Shown: one piece after another, positions 4,983 to 44,477 of the stretch
Layout: every line of letters starts with the position of its first letter
Numbering within the stretch: position 1 is the first letter of the stretch
The notes under the pieces: model-generated
What the model was told of the DNA's origin: nothing
What the model saw: the letters and a program-made list of their open reading frames with translations, nothing else
The model's database searches: none
Virus record (IMG/VR): IMGVR_UViG_3300020202_000061
Location: 186,001-250,000 of that record
Length of the DNA stretch: 64,000 bases
Reading direction: 5' to 3' (one strand)
Made by a program: the position numbers and the translations under genes

Positions 4983-5213
4983 ATGACCGCATATACCTAC
5001 GAATTCAACGGCGCAATCACTCTGTTTGAGATCGACGGACACACCCACATCAACGTTCGCAATCGCGAACTCGGTGCGAGTGCGATCCTGGCGCTTCCAG
5101 ATTCAATGGAGGCTCCTCCCTATGACGACAAGCTCGGAACCATGTACGCCGGAGGCAGTGTCCGCATCACTGTGGAGATCAATCCCGAAACCGTGGTCCG
5201 CTTGAACAAGTAA
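4983..5213 (+). CDS. hypothetical protein
   Basis: compact ORF after the tRNA terminator. Confidence 0.6.
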   Translation: MTAYTYEFNGAITLFEIDGHTHINVRNRELGASAILALPDSMEAPPYDDKLGTMYAGGSVRITVEINPETVVRLNK

Positions 5214-5226
5214 CCAAGAAGAAACC

Positions 5227-5457
5227 ATGCTCAAAAAATCCATCATCCACGAAGAAGGCGAAGGCTATACCGTTCACACCGGGGACACCCTGACCTACCA
5301 GTTTGTCAGCAACGAAAGCCCGACCACACTCATGCTCAGCCGCAAGGTTGCAGAGATCGCACACGATTCGACCGTGACCCGCTACAAACGAGTCCGTGTC
5401 GAAATCTCGATTCTGCTGGAAGACGAGGAGTACACCGAAACCATCGAATCCGAATAA
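5227..5457 (+). CDS. hypothetical protein
   Basis: compact ORF in series. Confidence 0.55.
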   Translation: MLKKSIIHEEGEGYTVHTGDTLTYQFVSNESPTTLMLSRKVAEIAHDSTVTRYKRVRVEISILLEDEEYTETIESE

Positions 5458-7940: not shown

Positions 7941-7969
7941 TTGACAAACCCAAGGGTTCCTGATATATA
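7941..7969 (+). promoter_or_regulatory. sigma70-like promoter
   Basis: TTGACA-N17-TATATA, followed by non-coding structured sequence. Confidence 0.7.
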
Positions 7970-8176
7970 CCCGCTGCCTCGTAGGAAGGTTGGGCTGAAA
8001 CCCCATCCTCTAAGGAGTGACGAGCGGAAGCAAGTAGGGAGCGCACCCGAAAGCAAGAGGTCCCACTGGGCGATGATCCCGACTGAGATGTCGGGTAGCT
8101 GAATCCACAGGGGTGGGCTTAGAACCGCAGGGAAACTGAAAGGCTAGACGGCAGCGTCGGGTAGTGGGTTTTTTGA
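7968..8176 (+). ncRNA. unassigned structured RNA candidate
   Basis: ends pair (CCCGCTGCC/GGCAGCG..GGG), internal hairpins, T run, no credible ORF. Confidence 0.45.
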
Positions 8177-8402
8177 TTTCCGGGCAACTGGATCAGTTCC
8201 TCCCACAAATGTCTGTGCTGTTCGAGACAAGCCGCCGAGTAGGTGCAGGTAGTTTTGCCCCCGCAGTACGTGAGGAACTGGGGGTTTGATCGGGACGGTA
8301 GATAAACGGATAAGGACCTACCGAGACGACTACCTAAAGCCCTCAGAGTCTTTGGCCTAACTGGCACACCACGCGGCATTCCAGCAATCTCTAAATATGA
8401 GC

Positions 8403-10397
8403 ATGAGATTGCTGGACCTTTTCGAAGATCACAATCATCCAGAACGCGGTGACGTTCGTTGGGCCGTGGGAAAGCATCTTTCCCGCGCCACCCGCGTTGG
8501 CACGAAGGACCAGAACGATCCCGATTACGCCCTGGTTTGGGGCAACATCAAGGACATCATGGACAATGCCGTCCCGAATATGGCGTTGGACCTGAATGAT
8601 CCGATGGGCGGGAAGAACCGGATCGGCCAGCGCGTGCCCAACGCGAAACTGCACTGGTCCGGTGGCAACTACATGGACCCGTCTCTGATCTACATGCGTG
8701 GCTCGAAGGTGGACTTCCAGGATGGTCGTCATCGCCTTGTCGCGGCCTACCAGCTTGGTCATCGCTATGCCCCGGTTTTGGTAGATCGAGAGGGACTCTC
8801 GGCGTTCCAGAAGGTCGTGCGTGTCAGACAGGACGAGGCACTGATCGAGGCCCAGATGATCCAGATTCCGGTGCGAACCCTAGGGGCTCGGCACATCGTG
8901 AAGGTCTGGAAGAATCCCACCCTGAGCCAAACTCGCGCCCTGGTGAACCGCATCCAGCAGGTTCGTGCACTCGATGATCGTCATGGAAACTTCTACTTGT
9001 GGGATGCACGTGATAGTTATCACGGTGCGATCCGTCGCGAACTTGGTCTGGGTCAGGCCGATTCGACCCGGCTCTACATGACCCCTCAGGGCGTGGCGAG
9101 CGATTACCTGGAGTGGAACCAAGACCCGGACTACGTCATCAACGGAATTGGTGTGTGGGCAGAGGACGATGAGTATTGGCGCACCAATAAGGGTACGGTG
9201 CGTGCGCTCGGCTCGGCTCGAATCACCGAGGATGCTAAATCATTCGAGATCACCATGTCCCATCATGGTGGTCAGGTTCGTGTCTGGAAGAATCCCACGC
9301 GTTCGCAAACACAAGCACTGGTCGAGCGTCTCGGCGAGGTTCGCGCGATCTCCACGATGAATGGGGATTTCTATCTGTGGCCTGCATTCCAAGCGATCCA
9401 CGAGACCGTGGCGAAGGAATTGGGTGTCAAAGGCGTACGGTTCTTTTTGACACCGATTGAGGGCGATAAAGAAGCATCGGAGTGGACGGGGCCGCCGTTG
9501 GAGATCAACGGGATTTGGGCCTGGGCCGAACCCGGTGCATATGCGGCCTGGAAATATCCGGGCACGGTTCGTGCACTGGGTCCGGCACGGAGATCGCGGT
9601 ATCCAAAGAATTGGAAAGAGGACATCGATGAGAGCCTGCATATCACCGAAGCACAATCCTTTGAGGTGGTTCTGGGCGACCACGGTTCGTGGAGAGTGCG
9701 AGTCTGGAAGAATCCCACCGCCAGTGAAACTCGCGCTCTGGTTGACCGTTTCAAGGAAGCACGCGGAATGGCCGAGGGTGCAGATTTCTATCTCTGGGAA
9801 GCATTCGAGGCGATCCATTCGACTATCGCTGGAAAGCTTGGCTTCCAGGGGGTTCGGTTCTATCTGACACCGGTTGGTTATGAGAAGTATGCGACCGAGT
9901 GGGATGGTAAACCCGAGACCTACAATGGCCTCTGGGTCTGGGCCAGTGATGAAGAGGGTTGGGGTTATCCTGGTGTACAGCGTGCACTCGGAATGACGCA
10001 ACCACAACTGCCTCAACGACAAATGGCGGCTGAATCCGCACGGATGCAAGTCGTGCAAAATCCGTTCGACCACAACAAGGAGTATCGAGTCTGGGTGAAT
10101 CCAGTTGCCTCGCAGACACGCGCCTTAGTTCATCAACTGGGGCAGGTTCGCGCCATATGTACGGGTAAGAACCTCTACTTGTGGAACGCTAATGACGCCA
10201 CACACGCGGACATGGAATACGCCTTGGATAAGGGTGGTGAACGGCTTTACATGGTCCCCAAAGGCGGGAAGCTCGAAGCCCCCGAGTGGGAAGGTCCGCC
10301 TGATCAGATCGTCAACGGAATCGAGGTCTGGGCGACCTGGGCCAAGACTACTCTGAAATTACCCGGCGTGGCTCGTGCGCTCGGATTGCCTTATTGA
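8403..10397 (+). CDS. late protein: ParB-like N-domain plus four ~120-aa VWKNP repeats
   Basis: DGRHRL motif; four repeats VW(K/V)NP..S.TRALV...YLW...RALG; TAAATA 5 nt upstream. Confidence 0.75.
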   Translation: MRLLDLFEDHNHPERGDVRWAVGKHLSRATRVGTKDQNDPDYALVWGNIKDIMDNAVPNMALDLNDPMGGKNRIGQRVPNAKLHWSGGNYMDPSLIYMRGSKVDFQDGRHRLVAAYQLGHRYAPVLVDREGLSAFQKVVRVRQDEALIEAQMIQIPVRTLGARHIVKVWKNPTLSQTRALVNRIQQVRALDDRHGNFYLWDARDSYHGAIRRELGLGQADSTRLYMTPQGVASDYLEWNQDPDYVINGIGVWAEDDEYWRTNKGTVRALGSARITEDAKSFEITMSHHGGQVRVWKNPTRSQTQALVERLGEVRAISTMNGDFYLWPAFQAIHETVAKELGVKGVRFFLTPIEGDKEASEWTGPPLEINGIWAWAEPGAYAAWKYPGTVRALGPARRSRYPKNWKEDIDESLHITEAQSFEVVLGDHGSWRVRVWKNPTASETRALVDRFKEARGMAEGADFYLWEAFEAIHSTIAGKLGFQGVRFYLTPVGYEKYATEWDGKPETYNGLWVWASDEEGWGYPGVQRALGMTQPQLPQRQMAAESARMQVVQNPFDHNKEYRVWVNPVASQTRALVHQLGQVRAICTGKNLYLWNANDATHADMEYALDKGGERLYMVPKGGKLEAPEWEGPPDQIVNGIEVWATWAKTTLKLPGVARALGLPY

Positions 10398-10422
10398 CAA
10401 ACCCCAGAGTTTCTCATAGATT
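10394..10422 (+). promoter_or_regulatory. sigma70-like promoter for the RNase P RNA
   Basis: TTGACA-N17-TAGATT. Confidence 0.7.
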
Positions 10423-10427
10423 TCCAC

Positions 10428-10774
10428 AGGGATATCCGAACCACCGGGCGGCCCAGTAATGGGAGTCAGGAAAGTCGGGACACCACGTGGTCATCCGAGA
10501 GGTTAACGGCCTCCAACTGAAAGGTTAGGGTAAACCGCACAGAGACAATACAGCCAAGGGGTTTCGGCCCCGGCGATAGGTGAAAAGTTGGGGCCTAAAA
10601 ATCCCTAAGGGTCCCCGTGAGGGTGACTCGTGCGGCACTTCGGTGGTGCAATTCCAGACCGAGCCTGTGACGGACCACGGGAGGCTCAGGTAGGAAGCAA
10701 AGAATCCAGGAGCAATCCTCGGATCAAGTCGAATGGTGGTTTGAGAAACAGAATCCCGCTTATAGGATATCCCT
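10428..10774 (+). ncRNA. rnpB: bacterial-type RNase P RNA
   Basis: P1 AGGGATATCC/GGATATCCCT; CAGGAAAGTCGGGACACC, ACAGAGACAATAC, GGTGAAAAG and ACAGAATCCCGCTTAT match conserved regions CR-I to CR-V. Confidence 0.88.
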
Positions 10775-10826
10775 TGATTTCCACCTCTACGCGCACCAAA
10801 TCGCAACAAACAACTTTGGAGATACC

Positions 10827-11450
10827 ATGAGATACGTTTGGGGTTTGCTGATCGCCATCGCACTGGTCGTGGGTGGTCAATTCAACACGGCGCTGGCTGA
10901 TCCGCCCACTGCTGTGAGCACGGAGGGATTGAAGGCCGAGGACCAGAAGCTGGTCGAGGACATGGTCAAGAAGCTCAAGGACGGCAATAAACCGCCGGTC
11001 GTTGAGAAGGTTGTGGAGAAGGTCGAGAGCCTCACGCCGGAGCAGGTATCCGAGTATGCCAAGGTGGGTCAGGCATACGGCACGGCGTTGGCCGAGACCG
11101 CCAAGTCCCTGGGTGTGGCGGCCGATGCTATCCTCGAATCCACTGCCGGGCAGATCGCCATGGTCATCATCGTGTGGAAGATGATCGGTCGCGATCTCAT
11201 GGAATATGTGATCGGCGTTGGTGGAGGTCTGGTTTGGTTCGGCGTGATGCTGCCGGGTTGGATGTGGTCGCTCCGCAAGTTTGTCCTAGGAGTCCAGGGC
11301 AAGGTCACGGAAAAGGTCAAGGACGGCGTCGTGATCGAGCGCATTGTCGCCCAGCCCGAATGGGATTCTAGCCGTGGTGCGCTCTACGCGGTGCATATGG
11401 CCGCCTTGGTCCTGATCTGCATCTGCGGCTTCATCATGGTGTTTGGCTAA
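10827..11450 (+). CDS. exported or membrane protein
   Basis: signal peptide (TALA-DP) and C-terminal TM helices. Confidence 0.7.
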   Translation: MRYVWGLLIAIALVVGGQFNTALADPPTAVSTEGLKAEDQKLVEDMVKKLKDGNKPPVVEKVVEKVESLTPEQVSEYAKVGQAYGTALAETAKSLGVAADAILESTAGQIAMVIIVWKMIGRDLMEYVIGVGGGLVWFGVMLPGWMWSLRKFVLGVQGKVTEKVKDGVVIERIVAQPEWDSSRGALYAVHMAALVLICICGFIMVFG

Positions 11451-14679: not shown

Positions 14680-15429
14680 ATGCAAGGCATTTACAAGATC
14701 AACGGTCTGGTCCATTGGACCGAGCGTGAAATTCGTCTGCGTGAGAGATTCATCACGGAGTTCGAATACGATGTCCGTGCATTCCTGCTCGGGACGAATC
14801 CTGCCTGGAACATTTCCCGTGTAGAAGGTCCCCTATTGACCCCGTTGGGGTTGATTTCCGCCGCGTACACTCCGAGTGACGTGTTCGTGCAGGAAACCTT
14901 CGAGAATGAAACACCGCTGGTTCTGCGCCCGGAAACCACTCCTGCGACCTACGCCTGGATGTGCCATCTGATCGAGCAGCAGGAGGCTCGCTTTCCGATG
15001 TGCGTATGGCAGGCCGGTAAATCGTTTCGTCGTGAACAGGATCAGGTCTCCAAGAACATGCGCCTGAAAGAATTCTATCAGATGGAATTCCAGTGCGCGT
15101 TCACGGCCGATTCCGCCAATGACTACCACGGCGCGAGTCTTGAACCGGTTCGTCGCATGCTGGAGAGTGCAATCTGCTTACCCACTCGTCTGGTTGAATC
15201 CGACCGACTTCCCGCATATTCCCAGATCACCATGGATGTCGAAGTTGACAACGGTGACAAATGGATGGAGGTCTGCTCGATTTCTCGCCGTACGGATTTT
15301 CCTATGAAGGCACGATTTGCCAACAAAAAGGGAGAGGTCGTCGAAAAGGAACTGTTGATCTTGGAGATCGCCATTGGTTTGGATCGCTGTGTTTACAATA
15401 GGTTAATTCGTGAATCCAGAATCCAGTGA
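14680..15429 (+). CDS. stand-alone class II aaRS catalytic core (GlyRS/ProRS/ThrRS-like)
   Basis: LRPET, GKSFRRE (motif 2), EFYQMEFQ, IGLDR (motif 3); no anticodon-binding domain. Confidence 0.8.
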   Translation: MQGIYKINGLVHWTEREIRLRERFITEFEYDVRAFLLGTNPAWNISRVEGPLLTPLGLISAAYTPSDVFVQETFENETPLVLRPETTPATYAWMCHLIEQQEARFPMCVWQAGKSFRREQDQVSKNMRLKEFYQMEFQCAFTADSANDYHGASLEPVRRMLESAICLPTRLVESDRLPAYSQITMDVEVDNGDKWMEVCSISRRTDFPMKARFANKKGEVVEKELLILEIAIGLDRCVYNRLIRESRIQ

Positions 15430-32657: not shown

Positions 32658-32698
32658 TCTCTTGACAAGGTTTGGGGTTCTGATATATACTCGGATAT

Positions 32699-32776
32699 GG
32701 CGGTGTACTGCTTAGCGGCCTAAAGCGGGTGTCTCTAAAATACTGATCGCGGGTTCGAATCCCGCCACCGCCGCCA
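32699..32776 (+). tRNA. amber suppressor tRNA (CTA anticodon)
   Basis: GGCGGTG/CACCGCC-G-CCA; GGTGT-CT-CTA-AA-ATACT; own promoter at 32662. Confidence 0.82.
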
Positions 32777-38421: not shown

Positions 38422-38970
38422 ATGTCTACGACGACAATCGTAGCGGGGATGTTGCAGTTTCTGCACCCGCTGTTCTTTGATACGACCATCGAGATTAATC
38501 GGGCGGAGATCGAATGTCTGGCTACGAACATCTACTTCGAAGCAGCAGCCGAAGAACGCCTTGGGAAAACCGCCGTCGCCCACGTCACGTTGAATCGTCT
38601 GCGCGATCCCGCATACGAACACAGCGTTTGCAACGTGGTCGAGGAATCGTTCGCCCCTGGCACGAAATCATGCCAGTTTTCCTGGACGTGTGACGGAAAA
38701 TCCGACGTGGTGCCGGTGGATACCAAAGCCGGGGCTAGGGTCTACCAGGAGTGTGTGGAAGAGGCGATCCTCGCCTACTTCGGGCTCACCCCGGACCCCA
38801 CGCAGGGGGCGACCTACTACTACGCGTATGAGTTGGTCACCCCGCATTGGGCATCCAAATTCAAAGAGGTTGCGGTGATCGGCGGTCACCGATTCATGGC
38901 CGACCAAAACGATCTCCGTCGTTACAATAATCCGGTCGAATCCTTACTGGTTCGGGCCAGCTATCCTTGA
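38422..38970 (+). CDS. cell wall hydrolase (SleB/Hydrolase_2)
   Basis: CLATNIYFEA..AVAHVTLNR..CQFSW..IGGHRF. Confidence 0.9.
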   Translation: MSTTTIVAGMLQFLHPLFFDTTIEINRAEIECLATNIYFEAAAEERLGKTAVAHVTLNRLRDPAYEHSVCNVVEESFAPGTKSCQFSWTCDGKSDVVPVDTKAGARVYQECVEEAILAYFGLTPDPTQGATYYYAYELVTPHWASKFKEVAVIGGHRFMADQNDLRRYNNPVESLLVRASYP

Positions 38971-39018
38971 CAAACCCTGGGGTTTCTGGTAGGATCGCGG
39001 AAATCCCAGGAGTCTTTC

Positions 39019-39255
39019 ATGACGTTTACCCGCGAGCAGGTCGATGCCATCACCATCGGTACGATGATCACCAGAGGTATCGATGACCGTTGGAGTGATC
39101 CTCATCCGGTTGTGAGTATTCACGCCAAGCAAAATGACATCGAGGGCAAGCTGTTCGTCTGTGGTTACACCACCTACGGCGAAGATGCTCAGATGAGTTT
39201 CTCCATCAAGGAAGGCGATCCCACGGATTTTCGCCATTACAGGATCGGCGAATGA
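39019..39255 (+). CDS. hypothetical protein
   Basis: AGGAG RBS after promoter 38967. Confidence 0.6.
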   Translation: MTFTREQVDAITIGTMITRGIDDRWSDPHPVVSIHAKQNDIEGKLFVCGYTTYGEDAQMSFSIKEGDPTDFRHYRIGE

Positions 39256-40499
39256 CCCAACCCTTTCCATATCCAGTTCGCCGGGTACTGGCGCGTCTGA
39301 ACCACGCGGGGTTCGAGGCACGTGTGGCGGGCGGCGCAGTTCGTGATCTTCTGCTGGGCCAGACTCCGAAGGATTACGATGTGGCGACCACGGCACGGCC
39401 CGAACAGGTTGTGAAACTGTTCGAACAATGCGGGCTCCAGGTGATCCCCACCGGTATCTTTCACGGAACAGTCACGGTAGTTGTGCCGGACGATGAGCCG
39501 GGCACCCCGACGAACCTCGTCGAGAACGAGGACCTCCGTTTCATGCAGATCGAGATCACCACGTTGCGGGTGGATCGGGAAACCGATGGCCGCCACGCCG
39601 TGGTCGAATTCACCGACGACTGGGAGGCCGACGCCGCCCGCCGAGACTTCACGATCAATGCGATGTTCATGGACGCCGAGGGTGAGGTCTACGACTTCTT
39701 CCACGGCCAAGAGGACCTGGAACATTCGGTGATCCGGTTCGTCGGCAACGCGGATGAGCGCATTCAGGAGGATTACCTCCGTATCTTGCGATTCTATCGG
39801 TTCGCAGCACGCTTCGGCAACAACGACATGTGTCCGATGATGAGCGACCGCGAAGCTATCCGCCGGAACCTCGCCGGGCTCAAACAGATCAGCGGTGAGC
39901 GCATCTGGATGGAACTGACCAAACTGATCCGGTTGCCCGGCGCGAGCATGGCCCTCTACTGCATGTGCCTGGATGGTGTGCATGAGGCTATTGACCTGTC
40001 GATGATCCGGACTGCCGAGTTCATCAACATCCGTTATCATACGGATGATCCGATCACGTGTTTGGTCGGAGCTTGCTCGGCCGACCGTATGCCCCTGGCC
40101 GAGGGCTATCAAACCCTCATGGACACTCTGTGGCATCGCTACAAGGTCAGCAAGGTTGAGGTCGCCCGAGCCCAGTTTCTGATCGCCCATCGTGAACCGG
40201 GACGGTTTCAGTCGCTCCAGGACTATCTGCGGCTGATCACCCAGCAGGACCCGAAGAGCCAGGAGTTCGCAAAGGAATCCGCGCAGTTCCTGGCACTGCT
40301 GCATGATCGACCGGGGATTTCCACGACCATCGCGGTTTGGACAATCCCAACGTTTCCTCTGACCGGGAAGGACTTGATCCAACAGGGTATCCTGCCCGGC
40401 GCGGATATGGGCCGAATGTTGAAACGGGCCAAGGTCTTTTGGATCGATTCCCAATACACCCTTACCACGGAGGAATTGGTAAATTTAGTGAGAACCTGA
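39252..40499 (+). CDS. cca: CCA-adding tRNA nucleotidyltransferase (class II)
   Basis: GGAVRDLLLG..PKDYDVAT, RRDFTINAM, DYLRILRFYRF, SGERI. Confidence 0.9.
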   Translation: MTQPFPYPVRRVLARLNHAGFEARVAGGAVRDLLLGQTPKDYDVATTARPEQVVKLFEQCGLQVIPTGIFHGTVTVVVPDDEPGTPTNLVENEDLRFMQIEITTLRVDRETDGRHAVVEFTDDWEADAARRDFTINAMFMDAEGEVYDFFHGQEDLEHSVIRFVGNADERIQEDYLRILRFYRFAARFGNNDMCPMMSDREAIRRNLAGLKQISGERIWMELTKLIRLPGASMALYCMCLDGVHEAIDLSMIRTAEFINIRYHTDDPITCLVGACSADRMPLAEGYQTLMDTLWHRYKVSKVEVARAQFLIAHREPGRFQSLQDYLRLITQQDPKSQEFAKESAQFLALLHDRPGISTTIAVWTIPTFPLTGKDLIQQGILPGADMGRMLKRAKVFWIDSQYTLTTEELVNLVRT

Positions 40500-43398: not shown

Positions 43399-43474
43399 GC
43401 ACCTTTGGTGAAGCTGGTGCTCACAGCGGTCTGAAAAGCCGAAGAAGTTGGTTCGATTCCAACAGGGTGCACCA
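43399..43474 (+). tRNA. tRNA-Phe(GAA)
   Basis: cloverleaf, CT-GAA-AA, CCA. Confidence 0.9.
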
Positions 43475-43548
43475 AGAAGTTGGGCTTTGCGATAGCCTCT
43501 GGATTGGAGCCAGTGACCGTGGTGACGGTCGAACAAAGTCGCAGCTAT

Positions 43549-43625
43549 GGTGGATATAGTGTACTGGTGTGCACGTCAGGCTGTGAACCTGAAAGGCGAG
43601 GGTTCGATTCCCCGTTTCCACCCCA
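43549..43625 (+). tRNA. tRNA-His(GTG) with G-1 and C73
   Basis: G-GTGGATA/TTTCCAC-C-CCA. Confidence 0.9.
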
Positions 43626-43638
43626 AAGTTTTGAGTAT

Positions 43639-43722
43639 GCACGAGCCGTTCCTTGGAGAGATCAAGTGGCTGTAAACCACCCGGCTTCGCCTGAGTAGGT
43701 TCGAATCCTACCTCGTGCACCA
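43639..43722 (+). tRNA. tRNA-Tyr(GTA)
   Basis: GCACGAG/CTCGTGC-A-CCA; variable arm. Confidence 0.85.
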
Positions 43723-43727
43723 ATTAT

Positions 43728-43818
43728 GGGTTTCCTTCTTCACGGCGGTCTGTAAAACCGCTGGCGCAAAATCGAGTGAAGCGGATGCTGAGAGGTTCGA
43801 CTCCTCGGAAACCCACCA
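43728..43818 (+). tRNA. tRNA-Tyr(GTA)-like, lacking a D hairpin
   Basis: GGGTTTC/GAAACCC-A-CCA; only 9 nt in place of the D arm; 28-nt extra region. Confidence 0.65.
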
Positions 43819-43891
43819 AATATCGCAGGTGATTAGCTCCTGAAATTCTTAAAGGCGGGCCGCCAGGAGTCCCCCGCCGCCTGCACAGAAT

Positions 43892-43975
43892 GCGGTCGTG
43901 GTGTAACGGTAGCCACGCTGGTCTCAGAAGCCAGTGCCGAAAGGCGTGGGAGTTCGACTCTCCCCGGCCGCACCA
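43892..43975 (+). tRNA. tRNA-Leu(CAG)
   Basis: cloverleaf with variable arm, CCA. Confidence 0.92.
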
Positions 43976-44112
43976 ACTTCGGGTCGTTTGGATTGGGTTA
44001 TTGCTCCATAAGCACGAGGGTGTAGGTTCGAATCCTACTCTGCCGACCAATACCGGCAGATAGCATAACGGTAGTGCACGTAAAACATCTGGTCCGCCTT
44101 TTATCCGAAGTT
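43976..44112 (+). ncRNA. YrlA-like Y RNA / circularly permuted tRNA module, copy A
   Basis: CTTCGGGT(C)G/TTATCCGAAG bulged stem; T arm, TCTGCCG-ACCA-ATAC-CGGCAGA, then D arm. Confidence 0.72.
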
Positions 44113-44118
44113 GATTTC

Positions 44119-44200
44119 GCGCCTATGGCGAAACTGGTAGACGCACTGGAATGAGAGTCCAGCGAGTAAAATCATGGAGGTTCGAGTCCTCTTAGGCGCA
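44119..44200 (+). tRNA. tRNA-Leu(GAG), no encoded CCA
   Basis: GCGCCTA/TAGGCGC-A then CTA. Confidence 0.88.
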
Positions 44201-44203
44201 CTA

Positions 44204-44339
44204 AACTCGGGTCGTTAGATTGGGTTATCGTAGCCCGTCCCCATCGTGGGTTCGAATCCCACTACCTGTCGTATGACGGGTATAGCCAAGTGGTTAAGGC
44301 AGGGACTTGTATAAACCAGTCGGCCTTTTTATCCGAGTT
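44204..44339 (+). ncRNA. YrlA-like Y RNA, copy B
   Basis: AACTCGGGT(C)G/TTATCCGAGTT; T arm, acceptor closed by GTAT, D arm, GGGAC/GTCCC stem. Confidence 0.72.
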
Positions 44340-44343
44340 GTTT

Positions 44344-44424
44344 GCCCTGGTGGCGTAATGGTAGCCGCGCTGGATTCAAAACCCAGTGCCGAGAGGCGTG
44401 TCGGTTCGAGTCCGACCTGGGGCA
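44344..44424 (+). tRNA. tRNA-Leu(CAA), no encoded CCA
   Basis: GCCCTGG/CTGGGGC-A then CCC. Confidence 0.88.
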
Positions 44425-44477
44425 CCCAGTTGACAAAATCCTCTGTATCTCTTAGATGAGTGCAGGGGATTATTTTT

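Follow-up and report, generated by a model that had tools for sequence, protein, structure and literature searches.

Bacterial class-A RNase P RNA (rnpB; E. coli M1 RNA, Thermotoga maritima P RNA; Rfam RF00010) is the catalytic RNA that trims tRNA 5' ends. RNase P RNA is one of the few ribozymes shared by all cellular life and, to our knowledge, is known only from cells and organelles. In plastids, cyanelles and some mitochondria, the rnpB gene sits on a reduced, non-cellular genome while the protein partner is supplied from another genome, and these organellar copies descend from endosymbionts and are often structurally reduced and weakly active alone. Huge phages duplicate parts of the host's translation apparatus, including tRNAs, tmRNA, CCA-adding enzyme, aaRS and ribosomal proteins (Al-Shayeb et al. 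2020, PMC7162821). The text of that survey lists tmRNA and CCA-adding enzymes but never mentions RNase P, and its tRNAs and tmRNAs were detected with tRNAscan-SE and ARAGORN, which cannot find RNase P RNA.

The DNA analyzed here (hereafter the window) is a 64,000-nt stretch, positions 186,001 to 250,000 of the IMG/VR soil record IMGVR_UViG_3300020202_000061. A first-pass annotation made from the sequence alone had proposed a phage-encoded RNase P RNA with its own promoter at 10428-10774. The observation was confirmed by the analyses below, and the interpretation that the phage supplies its own tRNA 5'-processing ribozyme was supported. The RNA is complete, in contrast to many organellar copies, and differs from the class-A RNAs of cells in being encoded by a virus, in its phage-specific extended promoter, in the absence of a visible rnpA partner gene, in a short P3 and a P11 in shifted register, and in being at most 55% identical to any cellular copy in hand. 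A literature search, which did not cover subscription journals, found no description of a phage-encoded RNase P RNA.

Class-A anatomy and promoter of the RNA

To verify the family assignment, for which the lack of a significant RNase P model hit had been named in advance as a refutation, the window was scanned with the Rfam covariance models. One strong non-tRNA hit was obtained, RNaseP_bact_a (RF00010) at 10428-10778 (+), with 146.6 bits against a gathering score of 100, E 3.5e-45, covering model positions 1-367 of 367. P1 has 11 pairs (10428-10438 with 10763-10774) and closes 10428 with 10774, which are exactly the ends given by the first-pass annotation, and both P4 strands that it had recognized were found in place, GAAAGTCGGG at 10470-10479 and ATCCCGCTT at 10753-10761. 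The RNA folded with an MFE of -138.3 kcal/mol (z = -3.95), and 0 of 100 dinucleotide shuffles folded as well. The description of the unit as free of ORFs was not literally true, since mechanical ORFs overlap the RNA at 10525-10863 (-, 112 aa), 10630-10830 (+, 66 aa) and 10686-10880 (-, 64 aa), but none of them passed a codon-usage gene model trained on the window's own genes.

The alignment and the sequence showed all type-A elements from P1 to P18, indicating a complete class-A RNase P RNA and not a fragment or an attachment-site remnant. P2 is AACCACC/GGUGGUU, and P3 is short and capped by GUAA. The P4 5' strand (10472-10480; AAG, bulged U10475, CGGGA), within conserved region CR-I, pairs with the 3' strand (10754-10761; UCCCG CUU), within CR-V, with two compensatory differences from the family consensus. 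P5, P7, P8 and P9 (GAAA loop) are present, as are P12 with a UUCG loop, P13, P14 (GUGA loop), P15-P17 and P18 (GCAA loop), so that L9, L14 and L18 are GNRA loops. The P6 pseudoknot, read from the sequence, pairs UGGUC (10488-10492) with GACCA (10673-10677) in the P17 loop. In the specificity domain, CR-II (ACAGAGACAAUAC, J11/12) lies at 10539-10551 and was aligned to the model's ACAGAAAacAgAC, and CR-III (GGUGAAAA, J12/13) lies at 10579-10586. The L15/16 internal-loop strand AGGUA (10688-10692), aligned to the model's GGGUa, contains the GGU that binds the tRNA 3'-CCA in class-A enzymes. All of the unpaired conserved regions CR-I to CR-V are present. About 92 of the 102 model pairs are canonical in this alignment. 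Four of the ten exceptions are P11 pairs, which are restored by a register shift of 1-2 nt (CCGCAC/GUGCGG) that is supported by the orthologues described below.

The proposed promoter was also confirmed. TTGACA (10394-10399), a 17-nt spacer and TAGATT (10417-10422) match the consensus at 10 of 12 positions, and two such sites were found in the 800-nt region against 0.3 expected. The -10 hexamer ends 5 nt before the first RNA base, so a transcript started there would carry the mature 5' end without processing, and in E. coli rnpB the transcription start likewise coincides with the mature 5' end. No terminator follows the gene, and the 3' end was not mapped. A second promoter-like site (TTGAGA, 16-nt spacer, TAGGAT; 10741-10768, +) lies inside the 3' end of the RNA, positioned to drive the downstream 207-aa gene, whose product starts with a hydrophobic N-terminus that reads as signal-peptide-like. 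The promoter at 10394-10422 (+) is one copy of a 29-nt motif, TTGACAAACCCNNGGGTTTCTGGTAGANT, which with at most 3 mismatches occurs 7 times in the window, always on the + strand, against 0.00 expected in 100 shuffles. A further copy lies in the upstream flank. The other copies sit 20-30 nt before a ribosome-binding site and start codon of phage genes, and one of them (38967-38995) precedes an operon (38967-40499, +) that ends with a CCA-adding enzyme (39252-40499), another tRNA-maturation function. A looser pattern gave 15 sites on the + strand and none on the - strand, against 1.9 expected. The RNase P RNA gene is thus wired into the phage's transcription programme, which is hard to reconcile with contamination or a recent capture. 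The motif spacer, at window positions 10394, 17287, 18770, 38967, 47246, 47833 and 57684 and at 8154 of locus L128, contains an inverted repeat (AAACCC..GGGTTT), which could be an operator for a phage regulator or a specificity element for a phage sigma factor. One more copy (4 mismatches) at 7941-7969 is followed by about 430 nt (7941-8396, +) with no ORF accepted by the codon model, no Rfam hit and no folding signal (z = +0.72), and what is transcribed there is unexplained.

Genomic context and presumed substrates

The window belongs to a 347,504-bp contig, and the same sequence also sits in a 401,308-bp ENA contig, identical over the 12 kb compared. Of 104 predicted genes, 97 lie on the + strand. 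Most have no family match, and those that do are typical of large phages and include HNH endonucleases, endolysins, phrog families, RNase H, NUDIX, UDG, SAM synthetase and SAM lyase, together with a translation and tRNA set comprising the CCA-adding enzyme, two PTH2 genes, a class-II aaRS-like core, an Rv2179c-like exoribonuclease and an RNA-repair HAD domain. The aaRS-like protein (14680-15429, +) has 249 aa, consists only of a class-II aminoacyl-tRNA-synthetase catalytic core (tRNA-synt_2b, E 1.2e-11), is too short to be a full synthetase, and lies between tRNA-Arg and two tRNA-Gly genes. The flanks add an RNA ligase, a DNA ligase, a dCMP deaminase and a family-B DNA polymerase (PolB). PolB is 32-34% identical to that of jumbo phages Phosso, RsoM2USA, SCTP-2 and 121Q, and a 765-aa VWA protein (phrog_2426) is 36-37% identical over 97% of its length to a protein of about 500 phage records.

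The possibility that the gene is cellular, carried by a chimeric assembly, host contamination, or a megaplasmid or other non-viral element, was considered. In its favor, about half of the IMG/VR loci with RNase P RNA have no tRNA gene in the locus and look like host flanks, GenBank phage records with RNase P hits are host DNA or prophage flanks, and large putative plasmids can carry similar translation gene sets (PMC7162821). The size exceeds the 200 kb of huge phages, but phage identity rests on metagenomic contigs, and no capsid or terminase gene lay in the sequence read, which did not extend to the capsid, portal and terminase genes, so that membership in the huge Caudoviricetes is left undecided by hallmark genes and a non-viral giant element is not fully excluded. 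However, the same promoter-RNA-downstream junction was found in a second soil sample and the junctions recur in separate JGI, ENA and Logan assemblies, the gene carries the phage's own promoter motif and is syntenic in four related genomes, no bacterial RNase P RNA in hand is more than 55% identical, PolB and the VWA protein have their best matches in jumbo phages, and endolysins and HNH genes are present. That the gene is cellular and not viral is therefore considered very unlikely, and phage identity well supported though not complete.

ARAGORN and Rfam identified 30 tRNA genes, the presumed substrates, scattered among + strand genes (2100-62316, +). With these tRNAs, the CCA-adding enzyme, the two PTH2 genes and the aaRS-like core, the window follows the same genomic logic as other huge phages, in which a large phage duplicates parts of the host's translation apparatus. 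Of 25 tRNA genes examined, 22 encode 3'-CCA, which matches the retained GGU, 16 have U at position -1, and tRNA-His has an encoded G-1 opposite C73, all marks of bacterial RNase P substrates. An amber-suppressor tRNA(CUA) at 32699-32776, called 'Pyl' by ARAGORN, lies directly behind its own promoter-like site (32662-32691, +), which hints at TAG read-through or recoding in part of the genome, and 11 of 97 greedy ORF calls end in TAG. Inside the tRNA cluster 43399-44428, a sub-threshold match to YrlA (bacterial Y RNA-like, RF02553; 36.8 bits against a gathering score of 69, E 2e-4) was found at 43994-44110 (+). YrlA RNAs have a tRNA-like module, so this could be another RNase P substrate.

Orthologues, structural selection and wider occurrence

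The upstream 666-aa ORFan has homologues at 72%, 70%, 62% and 32% identity on other metagenomic contigs, one of them 409,210 bp long. In the three closer relatives, referred to as loci L132 (a 409-kb contig), L133/L134 and L135, the order of big ORFan, RNase P RNA and 208-aa gene is kept, and the ~430-nt gap after the big gene holds an RF00010 hit of 145.7-149.2 bits. These RNAs are 84.5-86.5% identical to the window's, similar to the flanking genes at the nucleotide level (71-88%), and the promoter is conserved in all four. L132 also has a hit to the selenocysteine tRNA model (5182-5270; 49.7 bits against a gathering score of 47) near the RNase P locus.

To test whether the secondary structure is maintained, the native helices were mapped on the four-sequence alignment by script, no new covariance model being built. 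Of 104 pairs, 79 are invariant, 13 have changes on both sides that keep the pair, 7 have a one-sided change that keeps it, and 5 contain a non-canonical cell, of which three were read as artefacts of alignment gaps or a shifted bulge. In total, 403 of 416 cells are canonical, and RNAalifold independently reported 12 compensated pairs. P4, P5, P6, P8, P15, the L15 GGU and CR-III do not vary, and CR-II is nearly invariant. The 49 substitutions between the window and L132 were then placed at random with the same transition/transversion counts in 5000 simulations. Only 2 of 100 pairs are broken, where 17.8 +/- 3.0 are expected (minimum 7), and 11 are doubly compensated, where 0.87 are expected (maximum 6), indicating that the gene is under selection for structure in the phage lineage. 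A wastewater variant differs from the window over 10404-10617 only by a distal P3 replaced with a longer, perfectly paired helix and by one U-G pair changed to C-G.

These results bear on the reading that the RNA is a decaying relic, an rnpB captured from a host and now drifting as a pseudogene. The RNA has the lowest Rfam score among the large-contig phage copies (146.6 bits against 167-300) and the longest terminal branch of the 75 RNase P RNAs compared (1.43 against a median of 0.11). The long branch, together with an identity of at most 55% to any bacterial or other viral copy in hand, could mean relaxed or altered function. However, the compensation statistics exclude a pseudogene for practical purposes, the promoter is conserved in four genomes, and the gene is retained in the relative whose neighbouring protein is only 32% identical, making this reading very unlikely. 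That more distant relative (L136 4775-5084; also L137) has an RNase P RNA of 130.5 bits at a different genomic position, behind TTGACA and a terminator-like hairpin, with an altered CR-I (GGAAGUUC) and without P13/P14 (43 model positions deleted).

A degenerate CR-I pattern found 83 loci in IMG/VR, of which about 55 contain RNase P RNA by nhmmer. Rfam confirmed full-length hits beside multiple tRNA genes on at least 14 further contigs of 100-463 kb, one of them cut at the locus end, plus four of 61-94 kb, and three of the loci also carry tmRNA. Across 13 of these phage RNAs all 8 P4 pairs are canonical and two positions covary (GC:8/CG:5 and GC:9/AU:4). As far as could be found, these RNAs (for example loci L055, L035, L013, L025, L080, L001 and L004) are also undescribed. 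They are of class-A type but very divergent in sequence from the window's, and most sit inside dense tRNA arrays, whereas the window's RNA lies between protein genes with its own promoter. Several (L024, L007, L001 8629-8905, L008/L053, L012, L003 ~11185-11410) are much shorter than the class-A norm (about 215-290 nt). In our reading of the MAFFT alignment, L001 goes from a short P15-like hairpin straight to the J18/2 region, so P16-P18 appear missing, yet it scores 188 bits. L003 gives only a weak bipartite hit, and L028, L013, L018 and L025 have a differently built specificity domain.

No copy was found in bona fide GenBank phage isolates by blastn, which does not exclude very divergent copies. 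The window RNA and the RNAs of L055, L035 and L013 were searched against 50,697 GenBank phage records, with either no hit or only host-derived sequence. The region of 'Microcystis phage MaAM05' (L085; MW495066.1 111323-119473) carries fabI, engB, mtgA, glyS and an unannotated RNase P RNA in one stretch and looks like host DNA within a phage record, 'Acinetobacter phage MD-2021a' is a prophage flank next to an integrase, and one record is a Salmonella contig. Megablast of window 1-25000 found nothing. For the donor, the CR-I variant 18-mer occurs in Gaiellales/Thermoleophilia, Bacteroidota and other MAGs, but none is more than 55% identical and the tree does not place the window RNA reliably, so no donor is claimed. 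RNase P RNA is sometimes treated as a cellular marker gene, and tRNA-focused phage pipelines do not detect it, so its presence here also matters for annotation.

Proposed function and protein partner

The best explanation, held at a probability of roughly 0.8, is that 10428-10774/8 is a functional gene for the catalytic RNA subunit of RNase P, carried by a huge soil phage of roughly 350-400 kb and transcribed from a phage-type sigma-70-like promoter whose predicted start coincides with the mature 5' end. The family membership, the class-A anatomy, the phage context with the qualification given above, the shared promoter motif, the vertical inheritance in a phage clade and the strong selection for secondary structure were demonstrated by the analysis, whereas the events during infection are deduced. 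In this view, the RNA folds and recruits the host's RnpA, because no phage rnpA was found in the roughly 83 kb examined and bacterial RnpA proteins function with foreign P RNAs, and the resulting enzyme would cleave the 5' leaders of the phage's many tRNAs. As these are embedded between protein genes on the same strand, cleavage would also cut polycistronic transcripts. A phage copy would raise or safeguard tRNA-maturation capacity alongside the CCA-adding enzyme, PTH2 and the aaRS-like protein, or make processing independent of host rnpB transcription. Cleavage of pre-tRNA was not assayed and no expression data were obtained, as the only RNA-Seq run holding a relative is probably DNA and gives no RNA ends, its contig running 24 nt upstream of the RNA. 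The molecule is an ordinary member of a known RNA family, and what is new is where it lives, in a virus, kept there by selection, and not alone. The finding extends the list of core translation-apparatus parts that viruses carry to a catalytic RNA, suggests hybrid enzymes made of a viral RNA and a host protein, and offers a set of fast-evolving and naturally reduced RNase P RNAs for studying the minimal requirements of the ribozyme.

The first-pass statement that no rnpA is seen in the window was confirmed. No PF00825 protein was found among the 104 window ORFs. A word-index search seeded with E. coli RnpA returned only Enterobacterales and was of little use, but an HMM built from 150 representatives, obtained by a phmmer search of 1.8 billion proteins, hit only E. 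coli's own gene when run against six-frame ORFs of the window and all fetched loci. Alignment of two small basic ORFs to RnpA with hhalign was negative. The search covered about 83 kb of a genome of at least 347 kb, with neither the rest of the contig nor IMG/VR screened, and the host has not been identified, so absence from the whole genome is not shown. The immediate neighbours (666-aa, 207-aa and 148-aa proteins) have no Pfam or PHROG family and are acidic or neutral, and so are not RnpA-like cofactors.

A different job for a real, structured RNA was also considered, such as a decoy that titrates host RnpA to cripple host tRNA maturation, a ribozyme retargeted to non-tRNA substrates (phage polycistronic mRNAs, Y-like RNAs or host RNAs), or an RNA that works without protein or with an unrelated phage protein. 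The very long branch, the identity of at most 55% to any other RNase P RNA, the lack of rnpA in the window, the YrlA-like match and the loss of whole domains in relatives such as L136 are in line with it. However, every element needed for canonical pre-tRNA recognition and catalysis (CR-I to CR-V, bulged-U P4, L15 GGU and J5/15) is kept and is invariant among the orthologues, nearly so for CR-II, a pure decoy would not need these, and the phage tRNA genes carry the canonical substrate marks, so that this reading is regarded as unlikely. The first-pass suggestion that the ribozyme is tuned to atypical tRNAs or Y-like RNAs was not supported by any test here, and its substrate-binding elements look canonical.

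More speculatively, huge phages may harbour a whole, previously unrecognized radiation of RNase P ribozymes that are inherited vertically within phage lineages, evolve much faster than cellular copies and repeatedly shed domains. In this tentative view, considered less likely than not, phages would be a natural source of minimal or re-specialized RNase P RNAs, which may work with the host protein, with an unrelated phage protein, or alone, and may give the phage tRNA-processing capacity independent of the host's own RNase P RNA, the loss of P13/P14 in L136 and the forms of 215-290 nt in other tRNA-array phages being examples of such shedding.
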